Assembly (NCBI RefSeq): GCF_963921235.1
Contig: NC_086101.1
Span: forward strand, 16,058,001 to 16,122,000
Reading direction: 5' to 3'
Source of the DNA: Mobula hypostoma
Taxonomy: Eukaryota
Length of the DNA: 64,000 nt
Part shown: piece by piece, positions 30,425-56,075 of the stretch
How the letters are laid out: each line of letters opens with the position of its first letter
How positions within the stretch are numbered: the first letter of the stretch is position 1
Position numbers and translations under genes: made by a program
The notes under the pieces: model-generated
What the model was told of the DNA's origin: nothing
What the model saw: only the letters and a program-made list of their open reading frames with translations
The model's database searches: none

Positions 30425-30430
30425 TTTATT
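30425..30430 (-). terminator. Candidate polyadenylation signal AATAAA of the receptor gene
   Basis: tttatt on the + strand, downstream of the last predicted stop codon. Confidence 0.5.
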
Positions 30431-30614
30431 ATGCCAACAATCCCACACTTGACTAGAGAGCTTGATTTAATCTGATGCTCTGTTAATTCGGGGAGAGTAA
30501 CCAATGTGGAAGCGGAAGTAAATGTAGAGACACAAACTCGGGCCATTGACAGATTTCTTTCCTCGAAGACACGGAGCATTTGTGAACAATCTGATGCTAT
30601 TGGGGTTTCAAGGT

Positions 30615-30746
30615 TCAATTAAAGGAACAGAAACTGGAATCCTTGTTATATTCACGACCCAACTGCTGAGAGCACGTTTGAGGACCTGGTTCTCCGATCT
30701 TCCCAATCTTCCTCAAGACCTGTTTGTTCACAGTCCCATCTTCCTA
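30615..30746 (-). CDS. Terminal exon C11 coding part (NAGNAG acceptor: immediate TAG, or 42 aa EDGTVNKQ...SFCSFN*)
   Basis: Acceptor ggctcttctgtgttttcag|tag|GAA, phase 0. TGA at 30615-30617. AATAAA about 190 nt downstream. Confidence 0.6.
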
Positions 30747-31618
30747 CTGAAAACACAGAAGAGCCAAATTAATTCTGTTAACTGGTATGGCCTGACCGTT
30801 GGGAGTAAAGAACCAACTCCTCTGTAGTGGCAAGGTACAGGAGGAGGATATTTGGCCTATCTAGGCTGTACTGGCTCTTGCAAAAACCAGTTTATCCCAC
30901 TGCTCCACTCTCAGCCCATCAACCTTCAGATGCTCTTCCAGCTCTCTTCTGCTCGCTGTGACTGAATGTAATCCCAGTTTCCAATAATTCGCTGAGTGAA
31001 AAAAGCCCCTCTTGTCTCATGAGGTCAGAGAAAAGGTTCTCTGCCCCATCGTGGCCGTGCCAGTGATCAAACTGATCCTACCTTCACCAATTTTACCTTC
31101 TTTGCATGCCTATCAGCTCCTCCTCCAGCAGACTCCGCCACTCATCTACACAATTGGATACTTACAATGGCCGATTATCCTACTGACCCAACCCGCACAT
31201 TGCTGGGGTCTGGGAGGCACAAATCATTGTCCTTATCAATAAGGTGAGCAGCTTCTGAATCACTTGTGTCAAGTGGCCTCTGATGTACACTCTCCCAGTC
31301 GAGAGCAGTTTTAGTTCAAACAGCTGTGCGAACACTCATGGTCTGGAATGTCTAGTTAATCTAGACTCAAGGGAATACACCCCTCATCTACTCAATCTCC
31401 CCTCTCACATCTCCAGTTTAGGGACTTACTGGAAATAATCCAGCCACAGGGACAGGAAATGAAAAATGTTCTGACAGATTCTAACCCAATCACCACTTCA
31501 TTTCATTTCTGAAGCTAAGGGCCAAACACAGCTCAATTTAACATTTCTCAGCTACATTTTCGAATCCCTCCAGGATCTCCCCACTTGCCCTGACCTCAGC
31601 AAATGCTTGCTTTCTTAC

Positions 31619-31656
31619 CTGGTTTGTGGCTTCTTCAGGCTGGAGGCTACGTTTTG
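31619..31656 (-). CDS. Cytoplasmic exon C10 (38 nt, AKRSLQPEEATNQ)
   Basis: Acceptor tttgcttctttctctaattcacag, donor CAG|gtaaga, phase 1-0. Confidence 0.75.
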
Positions 31657-31719
31657 CTGTGAATTAGAGAAAGAAGCAAATGAGGCATCTAAAGCATCAG
31701 TAAATGTTACTGACAGATG

Positions 31720-32600
31720 ACCCCGTTTAGTCTCATTCCTGTTTAACCCCCTGTCCCAATTTAGTCCCATTCCTGTTTAATCTCCTCAGTTCCCATTTAT
31801 CCCCATTCTTGTTTAATCCGGTCAGTCCCTATTTAGCCAATTCCTGTCACCATTTTAACACCTCTGCCTATTTTAACCAGTTCCCATAGAACCTCTATTC
31901 TCATTTTACCCCTCAATCCCCACTCGAATGACTGTATCCATTTTAAGCACTCCATCTCCATTTTAATCACACTGATATTTCCCCATCCACATTATATTCC
32001 AGTCCCCATTTTAAATCTGTTACCATTTTAACCCCACTGACTAGTTCACCCCGTTCCTATTTAACCCCACTATTTCACACCAGTCCCTATTTAAACCCCA
32101 TTGGTTTTACCCCATTCCCAGTTTAACCCCACTATTTTACCCCAATCCCCATTTTAATCCCACGATTTTATCCCAGTTCCCCTGAACCCCCATTCACATT
32201 TTACATGAGTCTCCGCTTTAATGACTATATCCATTTTAACCCCTCAGGCCCCAATGACTTTTACCCCAATCCCCATTTTAACCCCGACTTTTACCCCAGT
32301 CCCCATTTTAACCCCACTATTTACCCCAGTCCTCATTTTAACCCCACTATTTTACCCGTCCCCATTTTAACCCCACTATTTTACTCCAGTCCCCATTTTA
32401 ATCCCACTATTTTGCCCCCACTGACATTTTAACCCCACTGACTTTTACCCAGTCCATATTTTAACCCCAGTATTTTACTCCAGTCCCCATTTTAACCCCA
32501 CTATTTTACCTTTGTCCCCATTTTCACCCCACTGGCTATTTTACTTCAGTCCCCAGTTTAACCTCACTATTTTACCCCAGTTCTCATGTACCCCCAGTCT
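31720..32600. repeat. Degenerate ~19-20 bp minisatellite (ccccattttaaccccactattttac-like) in intron C9-C10
   Basis: Dozens of imperfect tandem units with a strong C/T bias on the + strand. Confidence 0.9.
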
Positions 32601-32632
32601 CTCCACCATGCGTTGCTACCCTTGATACTCAC

Positions 32633-32667
32633 CTATCACATTCAGTTCGTCATAGCCGTCGTCCTGC
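32633..32667 (-). CDS. Cytoplasmic exon C9 (35 nt, EQDDGYDELNVI), YxxL motif
   Basis: Acceptor catcctccccacttcctttggcag, donor TAG|gtgagt, phase 2-1. Confidence 0.78.
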
Positions 32668-33553
32668 CTGCCAAAGGAAGTGGGGAGGATGGGGTTAATG
32701 AGACCTGGAATCTGTGCTGGTGGCATTTTACGTTTCTGTGGCGACTGGCGTCAGATTTTTATTTTACGAAATTCAGCATCTACCTCTTGTAGTGGGACCA
32801 CCCTGCAGTATCTCACTAATCCCACCATTACATGCTGTACCCGGTGCACAGTAACACTGGTTGCACTGGAGCCAGACCTTTGGTGCATTTTGTAACAGGT
32901 ACCCATGAAGTGCTGTCTCCCCCAGTACTGTGTTTCTGACCCAATGTTCTGCAGGAAAGGGAGCAAAACTACTCAACTCATTCAAGGGGCGAGTAAAGTC
33001 CTGAAAAATATATATAATGTATGCTTTGCTTGAGAATAATGTCAGTACGATAAACACAGGCGATTCTGCAGAAGTTGGACATCCAACGCAACACAGACAA
33101 ATGCCACCCAGCTTCCCTCTCACCTGGTCTCACCTATCACCTGCCAGCTTGTATTCCTTACCCCCACCACCATTACCTTCTCATTCCGGCTTCTCTCCTT
33201 CTCCCCCCACCACCCCCACTTCCTTTTCAGTCACGATGAAAGGTCTCAACCAGTGTTTATTCCTCTCCATAGATGCTGTCTGACCTGCTGAGTTCCTCCA
33301 GCATTTTGTGTGTAACTCTGTTTACGTGATGCTATGTGATGCTTCTACAATTAACTGTTTCATTGCATCCATGCATATGACAATAAACTCCAGTGTGACT
33401 TTTACTCACAGAATTCAACCATGTCTAAAGTGACTATTTGGTGTTCTTTTTGGTTATATATTAATGCATTTTTATCATTATCTTAACTGTTTGATTATTT
33501 CATTAATATTAAAATTGAACAATTATAATAAACGTCAAATATTAGAGGAAATG

Positions 33554-33778
33554 TAGCTGGCTGGTGGCGCAGTGGCATCAGCGCTGGACTTCGGAGCGAA
33601 GGTTCCCGAGATCAAACCCAGTCGGCTCCCCTGGCACGCTTTCCACCCGTGCTGGGTTGAGAGTCGAGCTAGCAACTCGACCTAGTAAAAAAGAAATTGC
33701 CTGCTACAGAAACGTCAACAGCAAAAAGTTGATGGCCTATGTTCTCTCGTGAGTTTAAAGGGAATTTCTTCTTCTTTC
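33554..33778 (+). mobile_element. tRNA-headed SINE with (TTC)-rich tail and 11-bp TSD
   Basis: A box tggcgcagtgg, B box-like gagatcaaacc. TSD tagaggaaatg at 33543-33553 and 33779-33789. Confidence 0.75.
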
Positions 33779-33924
33779 TAGAGGAAATGCACTTAAGGTG
33801 AGAGGGAGAAAGTTCAGAGGAGATTGTGCAGTAAGTGGTTTTTTTTTAACACACAGAGAGTGGTAGTGGCCTGGAATGGTGCAAGTTGATATAGGAGTAC
33901 ATTTGAGAGGCTGTTAGATCACAC

Positions 33925-33925
33925 A

Positions 33926-33960
<35 letters not shown>
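33925..33960. repeat. (CA)n microsatellite
   Basis: Direct dinucleotide run. Confidence 0.95.
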
Positions 33961-33961
<1 letters not shown>

Positions 33962-34307
33962 CACTCATACAGACAGACACACACGCATCACACAGTTTAA
34001 GGTGCTGAAGATTTCTGTGTCTGCTGCCCTTTCACAAAGGAGTTCTGGACTCCCGCTCCACTCTTGTGAAAATGTTGTTCCCAATCTTCTCTCCAATTCT
34101 TCCACCTATAATTTAGTGCCAGAGTTAAAGATGATCTTTACCTGACACCCGCACATCGAACCCTGTACAGTGAAATGAGTTGTTTGCGTCCTCGAACAAC
34201 ATAGTCCGAGGATTATGCTGGGCTGGAGGGCTTATTTCTGTGCTGTGATTCTCCATACTCAGTCACCCTATGTATCCAGCCACAACTAAGCTAAGTAAGT
34301 AACTCAC

Positions 34308-34405
34308 TCCAAATCGCCATCTTCCACCGATGTCTTGGCAGGAGTTCGGTTTTTGGAGTAACTTGGATATATCACTGCATACTGGATGTTCTCTACAGTG
34401 GGTAC
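34308..34405 (-). CDS. Cytoplasmic exon C8 (98 nt, VPTVENIQYAVIYPSYSKNRTPAKTSVEDGDL), canonical ITIM IQYAVI
   Basis: Acceptor tctttttctccacaag, donor GGA|gtgagt, phase 0-2. I-x-Y-x-x-I matches the ITIM consensus. Confidence 0.78.
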
Positions 34406-34973
34406 CTTGTGGAGAAAAAGATTCGATTAGAATGATCTGAGTACAATCAGCATGGAAATCTAAGCTTTTCACTGTAGGCACGGCAATACAGTGAAGGATT
34501 AGATTAGACCAGGTCCATGTCTGCCTTGATGCTCCCCGAAGAGTCAGATTCAGATAAAAGAGATACGACAACAAATTATATCCCACATGATTGTAGCCGA
34601 AACGTCTCGAAAAATCTTGCCAAGCTTGCTGGTCAACCAAACTTCCAAATATCCCATCCTTCCCATAGCTGTCTGCCATCCACCCTTGTCTCCAAATTCC
34701 ACCCCTCTCTGTCATCTGCAGAGCATTATCTGCCTGTTATCCAGCAGCCCCTACCAGTTACCTCCAACACACCCTCATCTCTTTGTACAGGCCATCTCCA
34801 CTTCCAAGCCCTGGTGCAGGGTTCAGGGTTTTGAATGGAAATGTTTCACACCACCACTCCCCGCCACAGAGGCTGCTCAACCCGATTGACTCCTCCAGCA
34901 GATTGTTTGACACTCCAGATTCTAGCATTTGCCTTCTCTTGTGTCTCCAGCTAGTTATTTACAGATGGTTCAC

Positions 34974-37900
34974 CGTGATGAAATCTTAAGGATTACTCAT
35001 TACGGACTGTACCTTTAAAAAGAGAGAGAGTGTGCCGCTGGTTCAGAGAGAGAGGCACCGAGCATTTCATGAGTCGCCATTGTGATAGAAGGGCAGAGCT
35101 ATATTCTGGACAGCTGGTGTTCAGCATGTTTGGATATATATACAAGGTCAGCTGGCTTTCTGGTAGACATACAGAGACACAGAAGAAACTGACACCAGAT
35201 GAGCTTTGAGTGCCCCAAAACGGGTGGGTTTTGTGGATCGATCAGGAGAATCGACCAGTGGCTCTGGCAGTGCAGGAAAAGGGGTGACCGGTGGAAAGCT
35301 ATCAGTGTGTTTAACCCTTGCCTGGGTTTATAGTTTTACCACGTGAAGACGGTACCTTTAGTGTGGTTACATTCGGTGACCTTAAAGTATTCGGAGGACC
35401 ACGGAAAGATTGACGGCATCAGCTTACTTGGATAACAAATCACCTCTCTCTCGCCTCAATTCTATTCAACTCAATGTCACAAACTGAACTAACTTTGTTT
35501 ACATACCTTCATAAGACTGTATCAATTACCACCTAAGTTTGAAGAAGTTTGGGTTTTGTATTTACACACCTATATATGCATAAACTTTGCTAACCTGTTT
35601 GATTTATCTGGTTGTATGTTACTTTATTACATAGCTACTAATAAAACAGAGTTAGTTAACAGCAAAACCAGACTCCAGGTGCGTTCCATTTCTGCTGTTT
35701 CTTTTAACCCGTTACGGGTTACGTAACAAAATTGGGGCCTGCGTCCGAGATATGAACTAAATTGGGGGCTTACTGATTGAGTGATTAACAATCTTATTGG
35801 CTACTTTTCCTTTGATTGACTCGTGTGTAGAAAACAGCAGAAATGGATGTTTGGGATTTTCTGGCATCGCCAGACCCTGCAGCTTTGAAGAAAGCTAGAA
35901 AGGATGAGTTGTAGACATTGTTAAAGAGCTGAAACTTACGGAGCTAAAGAAGGGTATGACAAAGGTAGAAATTCAAAGGAAAGTAGTTGAATGCTATATC
36001 TCTACGAAGCAATTTGATGAGGAGGAGTTAAAGGGATTTCCTGTAGGTAAAGAGGAGATCCAGTTACGACTGGAACAAATGAAATTAGATAGACTTAAAT
36101 TAGAGACTGAGGATAAAGAAAGGCAGAGGCAGTATGAGGCTAGAGAGGCAGAAAGACAGAGTTCGAGAGGGAGAAATGGCAGCAGATATCAAGTGCCAGA
36201 CCGTGGTAATGACCTGGTTGTACTGTTTAATGTCAGCCAAGAAATTAAGTTGCTACCTCCATTTGATGAAACCGAAGTGGATAGGTATTTCCTGCACTTT
36301 GAAAAAGTTGTCCTGATTCGGAAATAGCCAAGGGATCAGTGGGTTGTGCTGTTACAAAGTGTGATTAAGGGGAAGGCTCAGCAAGCGTATTCTGCCCAGT
36401 CTCTTGTAGAGGCAAATGATTATAGCACAGTGAAAGATGTTGTGCTTAAGGGTTATGAGGTTGGATCCGGAGGTGTACAGACAAAAGATTCGAGATTTGA
36501 AAAAGTCTTGGAACCAAACGTATGTGGAGTTTGCCCATGGAAAACAGGTGTACTTCAATCGTTGGTGTAGCTCAAAGGGGCGAATGAGGATATTAATCAC
36601 TTAAGAGAGTTGATATTGATTGAAAAGTTTAAGAGCTGCGTCCCTGCTGAACTAAGGACGTACTTAGTTGAGAAAGAGTTGGCAACACTTTCAGTGTCTG
36701 CTTGGTTAGCAGACGAGTTTGCCTTAACCCATAAGGTTACGTTTTTCTCGAATAAGAGCTACCAAAAGTAACAGAGATAACCCACAGGTTAAACCAGAAA
36801 GTAAGTCGGGAACTATTGACAAATGTAAAGAGGAAGGAAAGCAGTCAAAAGGAAAATTTTCCAGTTTTACGTGTAACTTTTGTAAGAAACCCGGTCATGT
36901 GGCGTCTAATTGTTTTACTCTGAAAAGGGAAAAAGGAAAAGAAAAGGAGACAATCCCAAATGCTTGTGTTCAGTCGGTTGAGATACCGCTAAGGAAGGAG
37001 GGGTCTGACCGAATTCAAGCGTTATTTGAGCGGTTTATCTCAAATTGGTTTGTGTCTGTAAAGGAGGGGTCAACTGTGGTTCCAGTGAGAATCTGGCAAG
37101 ATACTGGGGCTTTTCAGTCACTAATATTAGACAGTGTTTTGGAATTCGGAGATGAAAACTGATGGAGTGAATATTATCAAAGGTATTGGAAAGGGGACTG
37201 AGGCTGTGCCTTTGCATAAGGTAATTTTGAAATGCGACTTGGTATCAAGACCAGTCAAGATAGGGGTACGATCTGGATTACCAAGACAATCCAGCAGCTC
37301 GGTAATGACCTTGCAGGTGGGGATGTTTATCCAGCAGTGCAGTTAACGAGAAAATCTGCAGCTAACAACCCACACATGGATACGGATATTTACCCCACAT
37401 GTGCAGTAATCCGAAGCATGTCTAAAAAATCTGCTGATGCAGATAGTTCGGGGCAGGGGGATTCTAAAGCCCATGATAGCCAAAACAGGGGTTCAGATCA
37501 TGATGATTTATCAGAGACTTTTCTACCGACCCTGTTTCAACAGGATTTGGGTAGTAAGGCTGATGAGAGAGTTTTATCTTTGTCTAGGAAAGAATTCCTA
37601 GCAGATCAAAACCGAGATCCTGAAATTGTGGCTTTAAAAAAGCAGCTCTCTCCGATGATGAGATTCAGAGGGAGTCAGTAGGATATTACCTTAAGGAAAG
37701 GGTGTTAATCAGGAAGTGGAGACCATCCACTGTGCCTGCAAGTGAGGATTGGACCATTGTGCATCAAGTTGTGGTTCCAAAAGTTTGCAAAGCTGAAATT
37801 TTAAACATGGCCCATAAGAAGCCGAAGGTGGACATTTTGGAGTGAATAAGACTGGGAGAAGGATTATGAAGGAATTTTACTGGCCTAATTTAAGGAAAGA

Positions 37901-40637
37901 TGTTGTTACCTTTTGCAGGGCCTGTCATACTTGCCAAATTGTGGGGAAACCTAATGAGACCATCCCAGTATCCCCACTTCAGTTGATACCTGTTTTTGGT
38001 AAACCTTTTTCCAAAGTCATAGTGGATTGTGTTGGCCCATTACCAAAAACTGCAGCTGGCCATCAGTATGGGTTAAGCATTATGTGTGCTGCATCTAGGT
38101 TCCCCGAAGTGATTCCTCTCCGAAATACTAAAGGTAAAACTGTGGTGAGGGTGCTCATCAAGTTTTTTTTACTCTGGTTGGTCTGCCCAAACAGATTCAA
38201 TCTGACCAAGGCTGTAACTTCACCTCAGGGTTGTTCCAGTGGATGGTTGGTGAACTGGGAGTTAAGCAGATCGTATCATCTGCATATCACCCAGAGTCCT
38301 AAGGAGCCTTGGAAAGGTTTCATTCCACTCTTAAGACAATGATTAAAACACACTGTGTGGAAAACGGAAAAGACTAGGATGAAGGTGTGCATTTACTTTT
38401 GTCTGCTGTCAGAGACTCGATTCAAGAATCATTAGGGTTTATCCCGTTTGAACTTGTTTTCGGTCACAGGCCCAGAGGACCTTTAACTTTACTCAGGGAG
38501 AAGTGGTCTAATCAGGAGGTATGTGTAAGCAGACATTGGAATTCAGAGATAGACTTAACAAGGTTTGTGTCCTTGCAAGGCAGGATTTGGAGAACTCTCA
38601 GAGGAAGATGAAGGTCTGGTATGACAGAAAAACTAGAGAACAGATGTATCATGTTGGAGATAATGTTCTGGTTCTGTTCCAACTTTTGATTAACCCACCA
38701 AGCAAAATTTAGTGGACCATACCAGATAATTTAAAAAATTGACTCTTTGAATTATGTTGTTAAGACTCCCGACTGAAGGAAGGCTACTTAAGTGGTACAC
38801 GTTAATATGATAAAGCCTTATTATAACTCGGAGACAGCACCTGTGAGTACTATTATGAAAACAAGTGGAGTCATGGAGACTGGAAACAAGTTACCAGATA
38901 ATTTTAACAAGCTAAGTATAGTCCCAACAAGGCTCAGGAATTCCACTGTTTTGGAAAACATTGACAGTAAAGTCCATCATCTGGAGCCTGAACAGCAAAA
39001 TCAATTGAAGGGATTAATTAGCAAATATGAGGATTTGTTCCCTGATATTCCAAAACAATGCACAGCTGCAGTGCATGATGTAATTTTAGGTCACGTTGAC
39101 CCAATTAAGCAACATCCCTATACAATGAATTTAGAAAAGTGTAAAATGGCTGAACAAGAAATTGGGTACATGCTGACAAACGGTATGATTAGGCTATCTA
39201 CCTCAGACTGGGCATCGCCCTGTGTAATTGTGCCAAAACTGGACATCAGCATAAGATTCTGTTCTGATTACAGGAAAGTTCATGCAGCGACCAAGACAGA
39301 TGCTTATCCTATTCCGAGAGTGGGTGACTGTATTAATAAGGTGGGAAAGGCTAAATACCTTACAATGATTGACCTGTTAAAAGGGTACTGGTGTGTTCCC
39401 TTGACAGAAAGGGCTAGAGAAATCTCTGCATTTGTCACACCATCTGGATTGTATGAGTGTAATGTTTTACCCTTTGGAATGAAAAATGCTGCAGGGATAT
39501 TCCAAAGAATGATTAATTCTATGATTCGAGGTTTATAAAATACAGAGGATTATATTGACGATTTGGTTGTATGGAGTGATACGTGGGAGAAGCATATCTC
39601 CGCAGTAGAGAAGCTGTTTGACTAGCTTTCCAAGGCCAATCTTACTGTTAAACTCTCTAAAATTGAACTTGGCCATGCCACTGTTACTCACCTTGGCTAT
39701 TGTAGTAGGCCGGGGCCAACTGGCTCCTGTGCAGGCCAAGGTACAAGCTATTGCTGAGGTTCCCGTTCCGACGGGCAAGAAAACTTTAAGAAGGTTTTTA
39801 GGAATCGTTGGGTACTACCGTAAGTTTTATAAAAACTTCACGGATATCGCTCTCCCCCTAACAAAACTACTAGGGAAGAGTGAAAGATCTGTATGAAGTG
39901 AGCTTTACCAGGAGGCCTTTGAACGACTAAAAACTATCCTGTGTTATCAACCTGTGCTTAAAGCACCTAATTTTACTCAACCATTTTCGGGAGCTGTACA
40001 TGCTAGTGATGAATCTGCTGGGGCAGTATTGTTACAAAAGGGTGATGATGACATTGAACATCCTGTAGCTTATTTCTCAAAGAAATTTAATGAGCACCAG
40101 AAGAATTATTCCACTGTTGAGAAGGAGTTGCTATCACTCATTTCAGCCTTGCAATATTTTGATGTCTATGTATGTCCTGCGCAGAAACCACTTGTGATTT
40201 ACACTGGCCATAATCCATTAGTGTTTCTGAGTAAGATGAAGGATAAGAATAGAAGGTTACTAAACTGGAGTCTGATCTTGCAAGAATATGACATGGAAAT
40301 AAAACATAAAGGGTACTGACAACACTATAGCCGATTGTTTATGCAGGTGTTAAGTTAAAATTTGTATACGCTTTTGCTATATTACCTGATAATTACACAT
40401 GTATTGCTTCAAGCTTTACAGTCTACAGTTGGACAAAAATTTGCTCCTTGCTCAAAATTTTTCCCAAAAGGTGGGAGGTGTGACAAAATCTTAAGGATTA
40501 TTCATTATGGAGTGTGCCTTTAAAAAGAGAGAGAGAGTGCCACTGATTCAGAGAGAGAGAGAGAGGCACCGAGCAGCTCCTGAGTCACTATGGTGATAGA
40601 AGGGTGGAGCTATATAATGAAAAGCTGGTGTTCAGCA
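34974..40637 (+). mobile_element. Gmr1-like Gypsy (element 3), degenerate, in intron C7-C8 of the receptor
   Basis: 5' LTR 34974-35728, PBS at about 35733-35750, gag from about 35845, CCHC at about 36870, PR (QDTGAFQSLILD), INT 37842-38611, RT 38792-39896, RH 39954-40319, PPT aaaaggtgggagg. 3' LTR starts 40479 and is truncated at a (GT)n run. Confidence 0.9.
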
Positions 40638-41412: not shown

Positions 41413-41462
41413 CTCTCCATCGGAGACCAGCGAGTTGTCTGGTTGACACTGGGTGATCACAT
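41413..41462 (-). CDS. Cytoplasmic exon C7 (50 nt, NVITQCQPDNSLVSDGE)
   Basis: Acceptor cgtattcactctcacag, donor GAG|gtaagt, phase 1-0. Confidence 0.68.
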
Positions 41463-41633: not shown

Positions 41634-42439
41634 CTGCATTGGGAATAAATGGTGGATTTCACTGGTTGAAAGTGCCCTCTCGTCCGAAGACAATTCTAAA
41701 CCCTGGTCTGCTTATTAGATTGGTAAGTTGTTTATTATTGCACTGAAGTACAGTCATCATACAAACCATACCATTACGTCAGTGCATCGAGATAGTACAA
41801 GGGAAAAGCACTAACAGAATGCTGAATGTAGTGTTATATTTACAGAGAAAGTGTGGTGCAAGGACATGAGGAGGTGGATTGTGAGGTCAAGACTCCATCT
41901 GATCGTACGAGCAAACAATTCAATACTCTGATAACAGTGGGGTAGAAGCTGTCCTGAATCCTGGTGGTACGTGCTTTCAGACTTTTGTATCTACTGCCTA
42001 ATGGGATGGGGAACGAGCGACAATGACCGGGGTGGATAGGATCTTTGATTATGCTGGCTGCTTTGCCAAGTCAGCGAGAAATACAGAGTGCATGGAGGTG
42101 AGGCCAGTTTCCATGATGTGCCGAGCTGTGCAACTCGATGTGGTCATGGGCACAGCAGTTGCCCTACCAAGCCGTGATACTGCCTTAGGAACTGGAGGTG
42201 TTGGTGAACTTTCCTGGCTGTAGCATCAATGTGGACGAACCAGGACAGGCTGTTGGTAATGCTGACAACTAGGACCCATGGGACAGATGGCCTGCTGAGG
42301 TAAGGAGTGACTGGGGTGTCAGGGAGTTCAGAGGTTGCTACCATTTTTGCATCAGCCACGCTCAAGGGGACTTACTTACCCATGCCATTGTCCATTGAGT
42401 TACTGAATGTCTTCAGGCTGTGAGGAGAAAGAGGGGGAA

Positions 42440-45700: not shown

Positions 45701-45744
45701 CTTTGCATTGGTGTGTAGATCAATTCATCTTCTGGCTGGATCTC
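45701..45744 (-). CDS. Cytoplasmic exon C5 (44 nt, EIQPEDELIYTPMQ), Tyr motif LIYTPM
   Basis: Acceptor cttaattttccttctgtag, donor AAG|gtgagt, phase 0-2. Acidic stretch before YxxM. Confidence 0.78.
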
Positions 45745-45779
45745 CTACAGAAGGAAAATTAAGCCATGTCACAGATCAT

Positions 45780-47270
45780 AAGACCATAAGACATAGGAAT
45801 ATAAGACAATAGACATAGAAGCAGAATTAGGCCATTCAGCCCATCGAGTCTGCTCTGCCATTCCATCCTGGCTGATCCCAGATCCCACTGAACCCCACAC
45901 ACTGCCTTCTCGCCATATCCTTTGATGCCCTGACCAATCAGGAAACGATCAACTTCTGTCTTAAATATACCCATGGACTTGGCCTCTACTGCAGTCTGTG
46001 GCAGAGAATTCCACAGATTCACTACTCTGTGCCTAAAAAAATTCATTACACTGTTCTGAAGGGTCACCCCTCAATTCTGAGGCTGTGCTCTCTAGTTCTG
46101 GATACACCCACCCAAGGAAACATGCTCTCCACTTAAACCCTATTTGGTCTTTCCAACATTTGGTAGATTTCAAAGAGGTCCTCCCACCCCAGCCTGCTTT
46201 TAAATTCCAGTGAGTACAGGCCCAAAGCTGCCAAACTACCTCCTCATATATTAACTCTTTCATCCCTGGAATCATCCTTGTGAATCTCCTCTGGAATATC
46301 TCCAATGACATCACATCCTTTCTGAGGTATGGTGCTCAAAGCTGTTGACATCTTTTGAAAATACTCCAAGTGTGGCCTGACTAGTGTCTTTTAAAGGCTC
46401 AGAATAATCTCCTTGCTTTTATATTCGATTCCCCTTGAAATGAATGCCAACATTGCATTTGACTTCTTTAACACTGACTCGACCTATATTCAAACCTTCT
46501 GGAGTCTTGCACGAGGACCCCTAGGTCCCTCTGCAGCTCTGAGGTTTGAATTTTCTCCCCATTTAGGTAATAGTCTGCACAATTGTTCCTTTTATCAAAA
46601 TGCATTATCATTCATTTCCCAACTCTATATCCCATCTGCCACATTTATGCCCATTCTTCCAATTTGTCAAAGCCCTGCTGCAATCGCATTGCTTCCTCAG
46701 CACTACCTATCCTTTCACCAACTTTTCCACAAAGCCATCAATTCAACTATCTAAATCATTGACAAACAATGTGAAAAGCAGCGGTCCCAATACTGACCAC
46801 TGAAGAACACAAGAAGTCATTGGCAGCCAACGAGAAAAGGCCCCCTTTATTCCCACTCACTGTCCCCTGCCTGTCAGCCATTCCTCTATCCATCCATAAT
46901 CTCTTTCCTTTAATGTCACTGGATTTCATCTTGTTAAGCAGCCTCATGTGTGGCACCTTATCAAACGCCTTCTGAAGATCCAAGTAAATGACACCCACTG
47001 CCTCTCCTTTGTCCACCCTGCTTGTAACTTCCTCAAAGAACTCTAACAGATTTTTCAGGCAAGATTTCCCTTCACAGAAACCATGCTGACTTTGACTTAC
47101 TTTATCATTAACCTCATCCTTAACAATGGACTCCAACAGTTTCCCAACCACTGGGGTTAGGCTAACTAGCCTATTATTTCCTTTCTTTTGCTTTCCTCTC
47201 TTCTTAGAGAGTGGAGTGACATTTGCAATCTTCTAGTCCTCTGTGACCATACCAGAATCAAGTGATTCTT
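45780..47270 (-). mobile_element. Old CR1 LINE fragments
   Basis: ORFs 45759-46067 and 46756-47151 (YLDLQKAFDKVPH). Confidence 0.8.
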
Positions 47271-48789
47271 GAAAGATCACGCCCAGTGCATGTTTGATTC
47301 TATGACATCAAGAGATTTTAAAAATTCCAAAGTCAAGATTATTGTTCGATGCACAAGTACAGTATGTGCATGTACAGGTGCAATGAAAAGCTTACTTGCA
47401 GCAACATCACAGGCATCAGCATCAGGTACACAACATTCACAGAAAAATATGTATTAAACATGAAGCATATACAACATGCAAACATGAGAAAGTCTGCAGA
47501 TGATGGAAATCCAAAGTGACACACACAAAGTGCTGGAGGAACTCAGCAGGTCAGGCAACATCTATGGAAAAGAATAAACTGTCGACGATTCAGACCGAGG
47601 CCCTTCTTCAGGACTCAGAAGGAAGGGGGAAGATACCAGAATCAAAAGGTGGGGCTTGGGCGTAGAGAACGAGTCTAGTTGGAAGGTGTTAGGTGAAGCC
47701 AGGTGGATGGGAAGGGTCAAGGACTGGAGAAGAAAGAAACAGATGGAAGAGAAAAGTGTACCACAGGAGGAAAGGAACCTAGAGGAAAGGAATAGGCAGG
47801 TGAGAAGTGAAAGGTCAGAAAGGGGAATAGAGGAAGTTGGAGGGGGAAATTTGTTTCCTAGAAGGAGCAATCAATATTTATGCCATTAGATTCGAGGGTA
47901 CCCAGACGGAGTATAAGGTGTTACTCCTCCACCCTGAGGTTGGCCTCACCTTGCTCAAGAGGAGGCCATAGATGAACACGTCAGAATAGGAATGAGATAT
48001 TGGAATTAACCTGTTTGGCCACCAGGGAGTCCTGGCTCTTGCAGATGGCGAGGAGGTGTTCGACGAAGCAGTCCACCAATTTACAACGTGTCTCACCAAT
48101 GCAGAGGAGGCCATATCAGGAGCACCAGACACAATAGATGACCCCAGCAGATTCGCACCTGAAGTGTTGAATCACCTGGAAGGACTGTTTGGGGCCCTGA
48201 ATGGAGGTGAGGGAGGAGGTGTAAGGACAGGTGTTGGGTTGGAATGGACTAGAATAGAATAGAATACAACTCTATTGTCGTTGCTCAAGACGAGATTGTG
48301 GTGCTACTCCAGTCTGTGCAGAACAGCTATTTACAATGCATGTGGCATGGCTTAATTAAAAAAAATTTACATGCAACAAGTGACTTTGGTAGTCCATAAC
48401 ACTCAAAGGCCATCGTCGTTATTAGAAGAACCTGTTTTTGTGTTACAGTGCTCGATCGCTCCAATTACTTAACAGAAAACCCAATTAGAACAAATATAAA
48501 GTCCATTGTAGTGTAATGTTGCGCTACTGAGGTAGTGATTAGGGTTCTGCAGGTTGGTTCAAGAACCAAATGTTTAGTGATCAGATATGGAATAATATCC
48601 ATGGATTGTATTAGGAAAGGGGTCTGGGACCTTGTGTGGAGTTAGTGGGATCTCCCTGGGTCAATAGAGGAGGCAGAGGTCACTTTAGGTCAATAGCGTG
48701 ATCAGGAGCTCTCCTGGGTCAATAACATAGTCATACCTTATTGATCCCGGGGGAAACTGGTTTTCATTACAGTAGTACCATAAATAATA

Positions 48790-49160
48790 AATAGTAATAG
48801 AACCATAAATACTTAAATAGTAATATGTAAATTATGCCAGTAAATTATGAAATAAGCCCAGGACCAGCCTATCGGCTCAGGGTGTCTGACCCTCCAAGGG
48901 AGGAGTTGTAAAGTTTCATGGCCACAGGCAGGAATGACTTCCTATGACGCTCTGTGCTGCATCTCGGAGGAATGAGTCTCTGGCTGAATGTACTCCTATG
49001 CCCACCCAGTACATTTTGTAGTGGATGGGAGACATTGACCAAGATGGCATGCAACTTACACAGCATCCTCTTTTCAGACACCACCGTGAGAGAGTCCAGT
49101 TCCATCCCCACATCACTGGCCTTACGAATCAGTTTGTTGATTCTGTTGGTGTCTACTACC
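48790..49160 (-). mobile_element. Rex1/Babar-like LINE 3' end
   Basis: RINKLIRKAS..HPL..TERHRKSFLP C-terminal motif. Confidence 0.75.
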
Positions 49161-49490
49161 CTCATGTCATAATCATATGTATGCACAAAGGCAATAAAAA
49201 ACTGATTTGCAGAAGCATCATAGGCACACAGCATCAGAAACATAACATTAGCAAGAAAAACATCAATGAAACATCAATTATACACAATTTTTGCAAGATA
49301 GAACAGAATTAGACCAAACAAAGTTCATTTATTGATGCAAAATGTTGCCATACTGGGGCAGTGACTGGGGTTGTGCAGATTGGATCAAGAACTGATCTTT
49401 AATCGAGAAGTAGAGAACATGAAACTGGTGACATTTTGTTACAAATCAGTTTTCTTATGAGCACTCCGAGTGAAAGGGACACCATCTTAC

Positions 49491-49520
49491 CGGGCATGGA
49501 GGGGCATTCCCATCTTCAGC
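49491..49520 (-). CDS. Cytoplasmic exon C4 (30 nt, AEDGNAPPCP)
   Basis: Acceptor tcttatttcacaacag, donor CCG|gtaaga, phase 0-0. Confidence 0.72.
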
Positions 49521-50200
49521 CTGTTGTGAAATAAGATATTACAATGAGCATTTCTATTGGTCTACAGGAGCTCGAAAGCCTGGGTGTCCAGACTCAACAT
49601 TTAAGCTGAGACAGGGAAAGATTAAAAGAGGTGGGCAGAGCAAGTTTTTCTTTCCACACCGAGTGATGGCGTTGGGAATGTGCTGCCAGGGTTAGTGGTG
49701 GAGAAGACAGATACAATAGAGATGTTTAAGAGAATCGTAGATACTCACATGACATTGGACAGAATGGAGGGAAGTGAACCATGTACAGGTGGAGGAGATG
49801 AGCATAATTAGACACCATTACTTTAACTAGTCCAGCATTAATTGTGGGCTGAAATCCTGTTCCTGTAGTCTACTGTTTGACATGCTATGTCCTATGTCCT
49901 ATGTTCCTAGAACAGCTTTTTCCTCATTGCGGTCAGAGTTTTGAACGACTCGACTCTTTCATGTCCCTGTCCTGGTGGTGCTGCATTTTCTTGCAAGGAT
50001 TTACAGGAAAGTAAAGAAATACAATAGAATTTATAGACAAACTATGACGAACAAAGGCTGCCAAACAACCAGAGTGCAAAAGAAAATAAATAATATTGAA
50101 TTTGAAAGTTCTTGAAAGCGAGTCTATTGGTTGTGGAGTCAGTTTAGCGCTGAGGTGAGTGAGATTGTTCAACTGTTTCAGGAGCCTGATGGTTGTAGGG

Positions 50201-50280
50201 CAGGGTTTGAAAACTGGGATCCACGGACCCCTTGCCTAATGGTATTGGTCAATGGCATAAAAAAAGATTGGGAACCCGTG
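50201..50280. mobile_element. 80-bp hAT-type MITE
   Basis: Imperfect TIRs cagggttt../..gggaacccgtg. 8-bp TSD ttgtaggg (50193-50200) and ttgtaagg (50281-50288). Confidence 0.7.
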
Positions 50281-50786
50281 TTGTAAGGTAATAACTGTTC
50301 CTGAACTGGCAGCATGGGACCTAAGGGTCTGGTACTTCATGCTTTATGTTAGTAGTGAGAAGACAGCATGGCTTGGATGGTGGGATCCTTGATAATGGAT
50401 GCTCCTTTCTTGTGGCAGTGCTCCTTGTAAATAAGGTGAAGTAGCGACTTTCACAAAAGACAAAAAACAGAGATGAGCACTTGAACCTTTTCTTTGCAAA
50501 ACGAACTAGTTATCCACGTCCTCCCTCATTGCGAGCAATCCCGGCTATGACATCCAGTCTCTCTCGCTCTCCACTGTTATTCTCTCTACCCATCCCCTCC
50601 TCACAGCAATCCAATCTAAGTTATGCTTTCAATTTTGCCCAGTTCTGTTGAAAACCCACTGTTCCGGAACCTTAACTCTGCTTGATTCTCTGCAGATGCT
50701 GTTTAACCTGCTGAATATCCCAGCATTCTCTGATTTTATTTCAGATTTCCAGCATTTCCAGGCTTTTATTTTGCTTTATGACTTAC

Positions 50787-50827
50787 CGTCTCAGGTCCTT
50801 CCTCCAATTGGGGTGAAGGTAAATCAG
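50787..50827 (-). CDS. Cytoplasmic exon C3 (41 nt, ADLPSPQLEEGPET)
   Basis: Acceptor taattaattttacag, donor ACG|gtaagt, phase 1-0, open frame. Confidence 0.75.
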
Positions 50828-51922
50828 CTGTAAAATTAATTATGTGCATATTAATGCAGACACTGACAGATTTACAACTATCCTCTCCTTTCTACAGGCA
50901 CCCACACTCTCTGTGTAAAGAACTTAATTCTTAAATTCCCCCTATACTTTCCTCCAAACACCATAAAATTATGGCCCCTCATATTAGTGAGTTCAGCCTG
51001 GGGAAAAAGTCCACTTGATCTCTGCCACTTATCATTTTGTATTGCTCTATCAATCCACCTCTCTCCTCCTTCGCTCTAAAGAAAGCCCTGGCTCACTCAG
51101 CTTATCCTCTCCAATCCTGGCAGCATCATGGTAAATAATGATGTGAAGAGGACTCAGCACAATACACAATTGTGGTCTAACCAGGGTTTTATAGAACTGC
51201 ATTACTTCACGGTTCTTGAACTCATCTCCCAATTAATGAAGACCAACACACCATACGCCTTTTTCATGGCTCAATCAACTTGCACGGCAATGTTGAGGGA
51301 TCTACGGACATGGACTCCAAGATCCCTCTGTTTCTCCACACTGCAAGAGATTCTGCCAGTCACCCTGTATTCTGCCTTCAAATTAAGCCTTCCTAAGTGA
51401 ATCACTTCCCACTTTTCAGGATAGAATTCCACGTGCCATTCTCAGCCCAGCTCTGCATCCTATCAATGGCCTGTTGTAATCCTTGCCACCATTTCACACT
51501 ATCCACAACTCCACAAACTTCATGTTATCTACAAGCTTACTAACACACCCTCCCACTTCTTCATCCGAATCATTTCTAAAAATCACGAAGAGCGGCGGTC
51601 CCAGAACAGAGCAGTACAGAGCACCACAGTTCACCATTCTCCAAGCAGGATAGGCTCCATCTACAACTACCCTCTGCCTCCTACAGGCAAGAAAATTCTG
51701 AACCCCCTCTGTGGGTAAGGCAATTCTGAATCGACATTTGAATTGCCAAGGACACGAGGCTAAGTGGTGGAAGGTGGTGTTAATTCTGATGGGTACCCAC
51801 AGGTCAGCTTGGAGAAGAAGGGCTGAATGGCCAGGTTCTATGCTGCATGACACTCTACCTAACATCACAGACAAATCTGCCTAATGCGCTCACATGGATT
51901 GGCTCTGGGGGCTTTTACTTAC

Positions 51923-51960
51923 CCGCTGTGGTGCTGTCATTCAGAGTAGATAGCTCCTGT
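51923..51960 (-). CDS. Cytoplasmic exon C2 (38 nt, RQELSTLNDSTTA)
   Basis: Acceptor tttccactttttctcttcag, donor CGG|gtaagt, phase 2-1, 97-nt intron to C1. Confidence 0.8.
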
Positions 51961-52057
51961 CTGAAGAGAAAAAGTGGAAAATGTTTACTCCCTGTGTGTC
52001 CCTTTACATTGCAATGGAACACATTCTGTAAAACACAAGCGTGTAGCAAGCACTCAC

Positions 52058-52076
52058 CTTTGAAACAGGAGAGAAT
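52058..52076 (-). CDS. Cytoplasmic micro-exon C1 (19 nt, NSLLFQ)
   Basis: Long pyrimidine tract (ctttcttctctccttcccttcacag) and AAG|gtgagt donor. Phase 1-2 links the TM exon to C2. Confidence 0.78.
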
Positions 52077-53084
52077 CTGTGAAGGGAAGGAGAGAAGAAA
52101 GATGCTGATAAGTCAATAAACACAAGTAATTCTGCAGATACTAGAAGTCCAGCGATCCACACACAAAATGCTGGATGAACTCAGCAGGTCAGGCAGCATT
52201 TATGGAAAGCAATAAACGGTCGATGCTTCTGATCAAGGGCCTCCAACAGGACTGGAAAGGAAGGGGGTAGAAGCCAGAACAAGAAGATAATGTGAGGGGA
52301 AGGGAGTGGAGTACAAACTGCCAAGTGATAGGTGAGACCAGGTGAGGGGGAAGGTGGGCAGGTGATGGAAGGCGCATGAAATAAGAAGCTGGGGGGAGGG
52401 TGATAAGTAGAACAGGTGAAGGGTTGAAGATGAAGGAATCTGACAGGAGAGGACAGAGAATAATTGAAGGGAAGGACAAGGGGCATCTGAGGAAGGAGAT
52501 GATTGGGTAAGGAGAAGGAAAGGGGCTGAGAGGGTAACCAGAATGAGGAATGGAAAAAGAGAGAAGGAGAGAAGAGGAGAGGAATCAATGTTAATGCCAC
52601 CAGGTTGGAGGCTACCTACATGGAATATGAGGTGTTGCTCCTCCACCCTAAGTTTGGCCTCATTGTGGTGGTAGAGGAAGCCATGGACAGGATTGTCAGA
52701 ATGGGAAAGGAAGTCAAATTGAAATGAGTGGTCACCAGGAGTGCGCTTGTTCTCAGTTCCACCCAGGAGGGAAAGGTGGCTTCAGAATGCACTGGTTTCC
52801 CACTTAGCACTCATAACCGAGTCAGTTGTATGGACAAATCATATGGATACTTGCTTCCATTGGGCAGCACAGGGAGTATAAAAGATAATGATACGGCTTT
52901 ATAAGGAATTGGTTAGGTCACAGCTGGAGGACTGTACACAATTCAGGTACCACGCTGAAGGAAGGATGTGATTGCACTGGAGAGGGTGCAAAGACAATTT
53001 ACAAGGATGTGACCCACTGCCACTCACATAGAGATAATTGTTCTTAGTCTCTTCATTCTTGTTTATGTTATTTTTATTTAGGGA

Positions 53085-53330
53085 CACAGGGCAGTAACAG
53101 ACCCTTCCAGCCCAACGAGACTGCTCTGTGCAGTTACACCCATGTCACCAATTAACCTGACAACTTGTATGTCTTTAGGATGTGGAGGGAACTGCTGCAC
53201 CCAGTGGAAACCTACGCATTCACGGGGAGAACACACAAATTCCTTAGAGTCAGTGGAAGGAATTGTGCCACCCCTTTGCTGGCACTGTAACAGTGTTACA
53301 GGAACCACAATGTCACCGCGCCACCCCACT
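53085..53330 (-). mobile_element. V-SINE/HE1-like SINE
   Basis: Minus strand reads cagtttccctcc-like core ..ccacatcctaaagacatacaagttgtcaggttaattgg.., followed by a CR1-type tail. Confidence 0.6.
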
Positions 53331-54714
53331 ATTCTACCTTCACTGTCCCTGATGAGCATTTCTTTTTGCACTACGATGCATTGCACTGCTCTCCTTGCAC
53401 CAGTCTGTTGTCTTGTCCTCATGGCTGTATTTGTTGTTGTATTTAATGTTACCACGTACACCAGTGAGCTTCAAACAGGGAAGGGATTTCATCGCATCTT
53501 GGAGCGGTTGACAATAAATTTATCCAGCCTAGTCATCAGAGAAAGCTGCAGAATTGGGCACAATTACAATTAGGTTCCGACTGACTGGGCCTTGTGCCTC
53601 TTGATCGCACTGATGTTCAATACTGGGACCCACCAACTCGAGACAGTCCAGAATTCATGGGTGTCCTTTATGGACATTTTCACCCACATTACTAACCTTT
53701 GTGCACAGAGCAGAGGCCTAAACTCTGAATGTACTTCATCGCCATGACAGTATCGCTGGATTTCGAGCACGGAGCAGAGTCCTGGACTCGGAGTGCACCT
53801 TCTCAACTATCCACATCACTGGGCGCAGAGTGGAGTGCTGACCTCTACCTCCTTTACATCCCTGTCTATGTCCATACACCCTAATCTGACCCCTAACTCC
53901 ATTGACTGTCCTGAAAACCATCCCTACAAACTTAAAAGCACAACTTAGTCTGGGCCATGATCTCAAGAGATACCACAGCTCGCACCACGATGACCAAAGG
54001 CATATGGGACCAGACATCTCAGTCAGCAGAGATGAGTTGGGCTGAAGGGCCTGTGTCTGTGCTGATGACTCACAGATCTACTACCTCAATTGCCCTGCTC
54101 ATCTGCACATGCTGGTGAACCCCTTGGGCTTTCCAAACGTTCCTCACCTTTAAGGATATAAGGCATTGGTCAAAGAACATTGGTAGTGTTATGTGCAGTT
54201 TTGGGCTCCATATCTAGGAACCAATGTGCTGGCATTGGAGAGGATCCAGAGGAGAATAACAAAACTGATTTGGGAATGAAAGAGTAAGTGTATGAGGATT
54301 GCTAGCTCTGGGCCGTACTCGCTGGAGTTCAGAAGAATGGTGGGGAGGGATCTTACTGACATCTATCAAATACTGAAAGGCCTAAACAGAGTGTATGTGG
54401 CGACAATATTTCCAATATTGAGAGAGTCTTGGACCTGAGGGCACTGCTTTGAATAGGAGATAAGGAGGAGTTTCATTAGCCAGAAGATTCATTGCCACAG
54501 ATGAATGTGGAGGCCAAATCATTGGGTATATTGAAAACACAGGTTGATAGGTTGAGTATTGGTTTCTAAGGTTATGGAGGAAGGCAGGAGAATGGTGTTG
54601 AGAGGGAAAACAAATCCCTCAATGGTAGAGTAACTCGTTGGGCCGAATGGCCAAACCCTGCTATGTCTGATGATCCTATACTGGCCATAGAGGTATATGA
54701 TTCAGTCTCCTTAC

Positions 54715-54828
54715 TGGCTACGCTGCGTAGTTTTCTACGAAACAGGGTGCTGACGAGCAGGATGCTCCCTTGTATTCCAAAGACCGTTAACAGGATCACC
54801 AGGAGAATTGTGACAGGTTTCAGTATGC
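54715..54828 (-). CDS. Transmembrane exon of the NCR3-like receptor
   Basis: Acceptor gttttctcccccacag|GC, donor GCCA|gtaagg, 114 nt, phase 1-1. Encodes GILKPVTILLVILLTVFGIQGSILLVSTLFRRKLRSVA: a hydrophobic helix followed by a basic stop-transfer RRKLR. Confidence 0.88.
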
Positions 54829-55306
54829 CTGTGGGGGAGAAAACAACTCAGAACACATGAGCACAAATGGGCCATTTGGCCCTTCGAGACCTGTGAAGCA
54901 CGCAATGATATGGCAGCTGACCTGAAAGTGTTTAACCCCACTGGTGAAATCATTCCTGTTCCTGCCACACACCCTCCTCACTATTCCAGGGCAGGAAGCA
55001 CAGGGAAGTTGCTCTTCCAATAATTGTATAGGATGACCAAAAGGTAATAAAGTCACATTGAACGTTGATCTTCGTCTAACATTTAAATGTCCTACACTAA
55101 TCCCATTTATTTTCCTATTAATTTTACTGATAAATGATCCTCCCCACCTTCTCTTCAAATCCATCGAACTTTTACCACTTCCCAATACACTGGGGGCAAT
55201 TTACAGCAATCAATTAAACCACTGATCTTGGGGTGTGGGAGAAAACCAGAGCACCCAGGGGTGGGGGTTGGCCACACCATCACAGGGAGAATCCATTAAG
55301 AATAGG

Positions 55307-55560
55307 ATAGGACAGTGTGTGACCCACTACCCCACTGGGTCCCAGAGGGGAATAGGACAGTGTGTGACCCACTACCCCACCCGGTCCCAGAGGGGGAAGA
55401 GGGTAGTGTGTGATTGACTGCTTCACCTCAACCCAGAGCGGGAGAGAACACCTTGTAACTCACTGCCCCACCCAGTCACAGAGGGAAGAGGACAGTGTGT
55501 GACCCACTGCCGTACTGGGTACCAGTGTGAGAGAGGATTGTGTGTGACCCATTGCCACTC
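55307..55560. repeat. ~45-bp tandem repeat (ggacagtgtgtgacccactaccccac core) in the V-TM intron
   Basis: Two near-perfect units plus several degenerate ones. Confidence 0.8.
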
Positions 55561-55745
55561 TTCTATAATCTGCACACTGAGCCAATCATTGTTGATGGGT
55601 TGATAAGTGTGTGATCTCCAGCCAGTCACCCCAATGTAATTCTTGTTATCTGTAGTCTCCCATCTACATTCAGCGATGGTCAGCAGGGTGGGTGATGGTG
55701 GGTGGTAATAAGCTCAGTATTGTCTCGGGCTGGGGAACCACTCAC

Positions 55746-56075
55746 CTGTGTGACTGACGGTCAGCCGTACTCCTTCTCCGATTTCCTCGCCAATCCCGTC
55801 TATCCGTACTTTGCAGAAGTACATTCCAGAATCGCTCTCCCTCAAACCCACCAGCTTTATGGAAGCTTTGAAGGAATCCTCCTGGTCAGGCCCAAGGACG
55901 CGCCCTGCATACTCTGCCGTCCCGTTGGAGACTTCGGATGTGTTCCTGTACCAGCTGTAGAACACAATGTCTCCGGAGTGATTGGCATTATGGCTGCAGA
56001 CCATGAGGACCGTTTCACCCTCACCTGCAAATATACTGGACTGGCCTTGCGTAACTGTGAAGTTCTTGCTTTTTC
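55746..56075 (-). CDS. NCR3: Ig V-set (germline-joined VJ) domain exon, NKp30/NCR3-like
   Basis: Acceptor ttctcctttcccattgcag|GA, donor ACAG|gtgagt, 330 nt, phase 1-1. Peptide NFTVTQ..VLMVC..YSWYR..EVSNGTAEYAGRV..DSGMYFCKVRIDGIGEEIGEGVRLTV has B-strand C, C-strand W, DxGxYxC and a J-like GxGxRLTV in one exon. It resembles human NKp30 as I recall it (EVRNGTPEFRGRL, YVCRVEVLGLGVGTGNGTRLVV). Four N-glycosylation sequons (NFT, NHS, NTS, NGT). Confidence 0.92.

Follow-up and report, generated by a model that had tools for sequence, protein, structure and literature searches.

Gene structure and protein layout

The DNA analysed here, a 64,000-nt window of the Mobula hypostoma genome (NCBI RefSeq assembly GCF_963921235.1, contig NC_086101.1, positions 16,058,001 to 16,122,000 of the forward strand), carries on its minus strand a receptor gene, LOC134346462, whose existence and exon chain we confirm. 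In an exhaustive HMMER search, the product of its V exon proved to be 100% identical to part of a RefSeq protein of the same species, the lesser devil ray, XP_062903900.1 (hereafter P0002; 419 residues, "uncharacterized protein LOC134346462"). A search for exon chains that required AG...GT boundaries and exact translation to P0002 returned a single GT-AG solution in the window, and this reproduces residues 128-419 exactly through the V exon, a transmembrane (TM) exon and ten coding tail exons (Table 1). The chain lies beyond chance, because it matches an independent gene model, each of its exons has an amino-acid counterpart in sharks or stingrays, and its boundaries recur in the DNA of Chiloscyllium punctatum. 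The gene as a whole spans 56.7 kb, with its 5′ end ~23 kb past window coordinate 64000; the window holds the 3′ two-thirds of it.

The ectodomain of P0002 consists of two VJ domains. A preliminary description, made from the letters of the window, had rightly recognized a VJ-type V domain, but took it for the only one: residues 1-127 of P0002, which comprise the leader and the first VJ domain, are encoded outside the window, and a tblastn search found no leader, second V exon or extra copy of a tail exon within the 64 kb. The complete protein is laid out as leader, VJ domain 1, VJ domain 2, 8-residue stalk, TM span and cytoplasmic tail, i.e. as a type I membrane protein, and the orthologue from the stingray Hypanus sabinus (P0154) presents domain 1, domain 2, TM span and tail in the same order. 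The V exon in the window, which encodes domain 2, has a pyrimidine-rich acceptor (AG) and the donor GTGAGT. Its product matches the Pfam V-set family (E = 8.6e-13) and carries four N-glycosylation sequons, and the 3′ end of the exon encodes a J-like G-x-G-x-x-L-x-V sequence, here G-E-G-V-R-L-T-V.

The core of the TM span is free of Arg, Lys and Asp, as had been noted, and of Glu as well; a Gln occupies mid-span, and the core is followed by the basic stop-transfer sequence RRKLR. With no basic residue in the span, the receptor cannot pair a TM Arg with CD3zeta or FcRgamma as mammalian NKp30 does. In several shark orthologues (P0151, P0156, P0168 and P0171), the position of the Mobula Gln is taken by a Glu; an acidic mid-TM residue of this kind, unusual for a receptor, might mediate pairing with a partner whose TM span contains a basic residue. 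No gene for a charged-TM partner was found within the window.

The cytoplasmic tail, residues 268-419, is predicted to be disordered and is assembled from ten micro-exons, all of which show strong splice consensus; the first two together form an in-frame unit of 57 nt. The preliminary description had proposed 11 phase-matched exons beyond the TM exon and a tail of 146-188 residues, and both proposals hold, the former as ten coding tail exons plus a stop/3′ untranslated region (3′UTR) exon and the latter as 152 residues. The terminal exon is an inferred one, as the protein sequence alone cannot fix its position; the 3′UTR signals are an ATTAAA at 30471 and an AATAAA at 30430-30425, the latter ending on the coordinate at which the preliminary description began. 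Some 0.8 kb beyond this inferred polyA signal, a second possible terminal coding exon (29571-29594) has a good acceptor, and it could be an alternative or an ancestral terminal exon.

Table 1. Exons of LOC134346462 and other features of the 64,000-nt window (window coordinates; exons are numbered in the order of the protein)
Feature	Coordinates	Strand	Description
V exon	55746..56075	-	330 nt, phase 1 at both ends; domain 2, residues 128-238 of P0002
Stalk, TM and juxtamembrane RRKLRSV exon	54715..54828	-	114 nt, joins the V exon in phase
Tail exon 1	52058..52076	-	19-nt micro-exon; 19-nt counterpart in Chiloscyllium DNA
Tail exon 2	51923..51960	-	38 nt
Tail exon 3	50787..50827	-	41 nt
Tail exon 4	49491..49520	-	30 nt, in-frame alone
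Tail exon 5	45701..45744	-	44 nt; I-Y-x-P-M (YxxM), Tyr328
Tail exon 6	42380..42417	-	38 nt; conserved SLKTFSNS segment; opens the 186-nt ITIM cassette
Tail exon 7	41413..41462	-	50 nt; middle of the cassette
Tail exon 8	34308..34405	-	98 nt; ITIM I-Q-Y-A-V-I (Tyr371), non-conserved Tyr375 and Tyr378; start of the acidic run; closes the cassette
Tail exon 9	32633..32667	-	35 nt; acidic D-D-G-Y-D-E-L-N, Tyr400
Tail exon 10	31619..31656	-	38 nt; final coding residues, ends in phase 0
Terminal stop/3′UTR exon (inferred)	30425..30746	-	strong acceptor at 30746, stop codon directly after
Possible alternative terminal coding exon	29571..29594	-	seven codons and stop; resembles the C-terminus of P0155 (similarity only)
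Transposon open reading frames	4099-7601, 11560-13653, 18022-20832, 25657-27021	-, +, +, +	long terminal repeat (LTR) reverse transcriptase and integrase; several long interspersed element (LINE) endonuclease/reverse-transcriptase frames

Membership of the NKp30/NCR3 family

Comparisons of both sequence and fold support the assignment of the V domain to the NKp30/NCR3 family. Searched alone against the PDB, domain 2 finds its best whole-domain match in NKp30, and a family profile built from 15 sequences scores NKp30 at 72.8 bits within one domain; the runners-up in the profile search, at ~55-58 bits, are whole-chain totals of two-domain single-chain variable fragments (scFvs), and single pIgR domains reach at most 17.4 bits. 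A Foldseek search with an AlphaFold model (mean pLDDT 81) placed NKp30 chains at all of ranks 1-4, with TM-scores (a measure of structural similarity) of 0.81-0.83 and 29-30% identity. Moreover, domain 2 is 37% identical to the V domains of possum and guinea-pig NKp30, and the columns EV..T.E[FY].GR, D.G.Y.C.V and G.GT.L.V are common to domain 2 and NKp30. The claim that a single 330-nt exon encodes a VJ domain of the NKp30 type is thereby borne out by the PDB profile, by Foldseek and by the signature columns alike.

In a tree of 44 V domains, those of the proteins with a long tail of the P0002 type form one clade (support 83/88), from which three further elasmobranch clades are separate, and the cartilaginous-fish domains are split from bony-vertebrate NKp30 (mammals, turtle, geckos and lungfish) with support of 98/95. 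The tree comprises NCR3-like sequences only and has no outgroup, and it is therefore the PDB comparisons that carry the assignment to the family. The deposited nurse-shark NCR3 sequences QTT61898 and QTT61904 (P0065) fall into clades other than the long-tail clade, and their tails are short or absent. LOC134346462 is thus a further member of the known elasmobranch NCR3 family, already modelled, albeit unnamed, in RefSeq.

Two other Mobula hypostoma proteins are close relatives: P0155 has three V domains and an uncharged TM span, and P0001 (XP_062903898.1) has five V domains and no TM span. Both are encoded on the same 199-Mb chromosome as P0002, and the RefSeq accessions are consecutive. The tail of P0155 is without the cassette of exons that bears the immunoreceptor tyrosine-based inhibitory motif (ITIM; see below) and has lost its tyrosines. 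In P0001, domain 1 precedes four copies of the domain 2 exon that are nearly identical to one another; either the model is incomplete or the product is a secreted protein with multiple V domains.

Further afield, an uncharged TM span together with an ITIM of the form [LIV]QY[AST]x[IL] is also found in other shark NCR3-like proteins, in one lungfish NCR3-like protein and in one gecko protein; a second gecko model has an ITIM of this form and no predicted TM span. Judged from these models, ITIM-tailed relatives of NCR3 are common outside mammals. A shared ancestral ITIM exon was considered and set aside, as the profile-profile comparison of the long-tail ITIM region with the other NCR3-like tails was too weak (probability 35%, P = 4e-4, 23 columns). 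Basic residues occur at the membrane in two elasmobranch proteins: P0072 of the basking shark Cetorhinus maximus (XP_078422539.1), whose V domain belongs to the long-tail clade, combines a short tail with an Arg where the TM span begins, and the nurse-shark P0065 has a Lys in the TM span and a short or absent tail. Each is a candidate for an activating, adaptor-coupled receptor within the elasmobranch family, and neither lies in the window.

The cytoplasmic tail and the surrounding DNA

Homologues of the tail were found in seven species besides Mobula, from the genera Hypanus, Scyliorhinus, Heterodontus (several paralogues and isoforms), Chiloscyllium, Carcharodon, Stegostoma and Rhincodon, under RefSeq labels that are either "uncharacterized" or generic, and among these shark and stingray proteins every Mobula tail exon has its amino-acid counterpart. 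At the DNA level, the leader, V, TM, 19-nt, 38-nt and ITIM exons were matched in Chiloscyllium punctatum (locus L001) with boundaries at equal protein positions; the other exons coincide with assembly gaps in that locus, which contains 14,496 N.

Mean identity across the tail is 32%, and 16 of the 109 ungapped columns are invariant among the eight full-tail sequences, 11 of these 16 lying within the cores of three motifs. The invariant residues include Ile327, Tyr328, Pro330 and Met331, then Tyr371, and finally Asp393, Glu395, Asp397, Tyr400, Glu402, Leu403 and Asn404. Thus Tyr328, Tyr371 and Tyr400 are constant, and Tyr375 and Tyr378, which belong to the sequence VIYPSY, are not; this sequence is confined to rays and stingrays, and its tyrosines fit no consensus. 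The preliminary description had named four tail motifs (LIYTPM, IQYAVI, VIYPSY and DGYDEL), and all four are present on the minus strand where it had put them. They are not, however, of equal standing: IQYAVI is indeed a conserved ITIM, LIYTPM is better described as a YxxM motif and DGYDEL as an acidic YxxL motif, whereas VIYPSY has to be dropped from the conserved set.

The ITIM consensus, [IV][QH]Y[AT]x[IL], is present in 8/8 full-tail sequences, taking the form I-Q-Y-A-V-I in Mobula. A second ITIM or an immunoreceptor tyrosine-based switch motif (ITSM) is absent, the other conserved tyrosines being in the YxxM and acidic YxEL contexts. The acidic motif, DLExDxGY[DE]ELN (D-L-E-Q-D-D-G-Y-D-E-L in Mobula), resembles the hemITAM pattern of acidic residues before a single YxxL, but it is set in the C-terminal tail of a type I protein of the immunoglobulin (Ig) superfamily, which is not the context of known hemITAM receptors. 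It does not amount to an immunoreceptor tyrosine-based activation motif (ITAM) in Mobula, where there is one YDEL and a Ser at the position of the second Tyr; full ITAM spacing, YDEL-x6-YPQL, is seen only in P0005 of Scyliorhinus. By consensus, the tail thus mixes one inhibitory site with two that are usually tied to activation or co-stimulation, and these three putative docking sites have been preserved since the divergence of sharks and rays.

Against Pfam, the tail matched no family at E values up to 10, the ITAM family included. Kinship with LST1, a neighbour of NCR3 in the human major histocompatibility complex (MHC), was considered and was dropped as there was no match to the Pfam LST1 family. 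The look-alikes returned by an atlas feature search with a protein language model, among them the leukocyte transmembrane adaptors SIT1, LST1, SCIMP and C1orf162, had scores of 0.62-0.78, below the meaningful level, and we do not count them as evidence.

The exon structure makes the tail modular. Exon phases vary, such that skipping most of the single tail exons would shift the frame, and tail exons 6, 7 and 8 (38 + 50 + 98 = 186 nt) together form an in-frame cassette that bears the ITIM. In the Mobula paralogue P0155 and in P0151, a Heterodontus isoform, the YxxM exon is joined directly to the YxEL exon, with the cassette missing and the YxxM tyrosine replaced by Cys and Asp, respectively. 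From the absence of the cassette in P0155 and in a Heterodontus gene, it follows that the ITIM can be lost as one block, if only in the course of evolution. Among the sequences examined, no single gene was found to yield isoforms both with and without the cassette; its loss in paralogues is a fact, and a splice switch acting on it is a hypothesis.

Further variation is seen in Heterodontus. Its proteins contain additional repeats of the peptide segment that matches tail exons 1-2, and two isoforms differ by a 14-residue segment corresponding to tail exon 4. In P0157 (isoform X7), the leader is joined straight to the tail exons, with no V domain or TM span; P0019 combines a V domain and TM span of the long-tail type with the short VQYSAL-type tail of another NCR3-like group. 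The pair suggests that tails have been shuffled within a gene cluster.

Downstream of the gene, window positions 1-30000 hold transposon remains only (Table 1); within the first of the listed intervals, one open reading frame (6837-7601) gave sub-threshold SCAN and C2H2 matches. Repeats are also present inside the gene. Antisense to the gene, a LINE reverse-transcriptase fragment (38792-39538, plus strand) lies in the 7-kb intron that separates tail exons 7 and 8, and a 45-nt tandem repeat (5.5 copies, 71% matches, 55309-55556) lies in the intron between the V and TM exons. A 31-nt tandem repeat of 18 copies (32023-32587) begins ~45 nt past the 3′ end of the YDEL exon (32667-32633), within the intron that follows, and it accounts for the proline-rich, repetitive open reading frames on the plus strand there.

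Signalling and comparison with known receptors

That a long, multi-exon tail is encoded in the same gene as an uncharged TM span makes signalling through the receptor's own tail, not through an Arg-coupled adaptor, the natural reading, and in this respect the preliminary description, which had the receptor signal on its own, is well supported. With the gene structure, the V-domain family and the conservation of the motifs as observed facts, we infer the phosphorylation of the tail, the proteins that bind to it, the direction of its signal and the receptor's ligand. Our preferred reading, to which we would give a probability of about 60%, is that LOC134346462 encodes a self-signalling receptor of the NCR3 family, a mixed-signal co-receptor that leans towards inhibition via its ITIM, in the manner of BTLA, PECAM-1 and CTLA-4, and not a purely inhibitory partner.

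Most likely, Src-family kinases would phosphorylate the tail tyrosines, and the receptor would signal through the docking sites so created. YxxM is the class of site bound by the SH2 domains of PI3K p85, and Tyr328 in IYxPM would be bound by them. Tyr371, in its canonical ITIM, would be expected to bind SHP-1, SHP-2 or SHIP. Acidic YxxL sequences are close to the YEEI-type preference of Src-family SH2 domains, and Tyr400, in its hemITAM-like or first-half-ITAM motif, could bind Syk or a Src-family SH2 domain.

Several points weigh against this reading. There is one ITIM consensus and no ITSM, and strong SHP recruitment usually proceeds via two phosphotyrosines; the YxxM and acidic YxxL motifs, being short, are open to several interpretations; and the tail has neither a Pfam family nor a feature look-alike of meaningful score. 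Additionally, the gene model is a RefSeq prediction, whose support here comes from cross-species conservation. Finally, read-through at the donor of the TM exon leads into an open frame of ~52 residues and then a stop, with no tyrosine motif, and there may be an isoform with this motif-free tail.

The preliminary description had gone further towards inhibition, taking the receptor to be probably inhibitory or tunable and perhaps the inhibitory partner in a paired NCR3 system of cartilaginous fish. As a dedicated inhibitory receptor, it would recruit SHP-1/SHP-2 through the ITIM and act, within a paired NCR3 system, as the inhibitory counterpart of an activating receptor. The invariance of the ITIM consensus in all eight full-tail sequences and the uncharged TM span are what such a receptor should have, and there are relatives whose TM span has a basic residue and whose tail is short or absent, namely P0072 in the same V clade and, more distantly, QTT61904 (P0065). 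On the other hand, there is just one ITIM, and the YxxM and acidic YxEL motifs, which by consensus are not inhibitory, are conserved equally well. Of the inhibitory claim, therefore, the ITIM itself stands, as one of three conserved signals, and the inhibitory sign is not established; against the paired-partner claim stand the absence of a charged-TM partner from the window and the uncharged TM span of the adjacent paralogue P0155. We regard a dedicated inhibitory role as unlikely.

Tipping the balance the other way, the receptor might be mainly activating or co-stimulatory. The YxxM would recruit PI3K, as it does in CD28, ICOS and DAP10, Syk would be recruited by the acidic YxEL in the role of a hemITAM or a residual ITAM, and the ITIM would do no more than temper the signal. 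IYxPM and DLExD.GY[DE]ELN are invariant, Scyliorhinus retains the ITAM spacing YDEL-x6-YPQL, and the paralogues without the ITIM cassette retain the other exons. In these same paralogues, however, the YxxM tyrosine is gone as well (replaced by Cys in P0155 and by Asp in P0151), a loss that speaks against selection for an activating form; in Mobula, the Ser at the second tyrosine position leaves no ITAM; and the known hemITAMs are in the N-terminal tails of C-type lectin receptors. On balance, we consider a mainly activating function improbable. Most improbable of all is that the gene model is an artefact, with the receptor ending soon after the TM exon and the tail exons unused or belonging to a separate small adaptor gene, for although the model is predicted and the read-through frame exists, the phase-1 end of the TM exon meets the phase-1 start of the next exon in a unique chain, the tail exons have no start codon, leader or TM span of their own, the linkage of V domain, TM span and tail has been modelled independently in seven other species, and the Heterodontus isoform P0157 joins a receptor leader directly to tail exons.

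The mixed-signal co-receptor that we prefer would also permit a broader proposal, which we put forward tentatively and would sooner doubt than assert: that NKp30 was ancestrally self-signalling, with an uncharged TM span and a modular micro-exon tail (YxxM, ITIM and ITAM-like YxEL) in which removal of the 186-nt cassette, through splicing or through its loss in paralogues, changes the sign of the signal, and that the mammalian form, with its TM Arg and CD3zeta coupling, is late and derived. NKp30 is one of the few natural killer cell receptors that can be traced across jawed vertebrates, and its signalling, which in mammals relies on the TM Arg and on borrowed adaptors, is not known to have been studied outside them; here, a different form of the family, with its own three-site tyrosine tail, is conserved in all eight elasmobranch species examined. 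The encoding of this tail in micro-exons invites control by splicing. Should the tail function in line with its motifs, it would provide a concrete, testable view of signalling in the family prior to the rise of the adaptor-coupled form, with three tyrosines to mutate. What is added here is the anatomy of the tail and its conservation, not a new kind of receptor, as the shark family has already been published.

Indeed, MHC linkage of shark NCR3 is published, and Kinlein et al. reportedly distinguished, in 2021, eight subtypes of nurse-shark NCR3 (GenBank MT914154-MT914161). The ray receptor has its V-domain family in common with these elasmobranch proteins, although the nurse-shark proteins that we could identify are in other clades. 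Full-text literature searching, which did not reach the main nurse-shark NCR3 study, found no description of shark NCR3 tails, and the long-tail type may already have been described among the nurse-shark subtypes. Closer in design are the shark "NCR3-like" and "SIRP-beta-like" proteins P0062, P0043, P0044 and P0080, which, like the ray receptor, have NKp30-type VJ domains, an uncharged TM span and an ITIM, of the form VQY[AS]xL; their tails differ in being shorter, with one or two ITIM/ITSM sites, no IYxPM and no acidic YxEL. In Heterodontus, proteins with VQY[AS]xL tails and the long-tail genes have RefSeq accessions of similar number, an indication that the two types lie in one cluster.

The CD28 family is marked by a proline motif in the FG loop (PMC11599192, a 2024 study that does not deal with the family of the ray receptor). 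The ray receptor shares a YxxM in the tail with the CD28/CTLA-4 family, but domain 2 has no such motif in its FG loop and the ectodomain has two V domains. With BTLA, PECAM-1 and CTLA-4, it shares an Ig ectodomain, an uncharged TM span and a tail in which an ITIM stands beside non-ITIM tyrosine docking sites. The PECAM-1 tail is likewise encoded by many small exons, which in PECAM-1 are alternatively spliced. The ray tail, however, has no detected homology to known tail families, and its ectodomain is of the NKp30 type.

Mammalian NKp30 itself is the closest match in both sequence profile and fold, and it has the same VJ-type V domain encoded by a single exon. It consists of one such domain, a TM span and a short tail that lacks tyrosine motifs; the Arg of the span, which can be seen in P0127 and P0140, provides the coupling to CD3zeta or FcRgamma. 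P0002 departs from both hallmarks of the mammalian activating type, the basic TM residue with a short tail and the single Ig domain: in their place, it has a pair of VJ domains, an uncharged TM span and a tail of 152 residues in which three tyrosine motifs are conserved.

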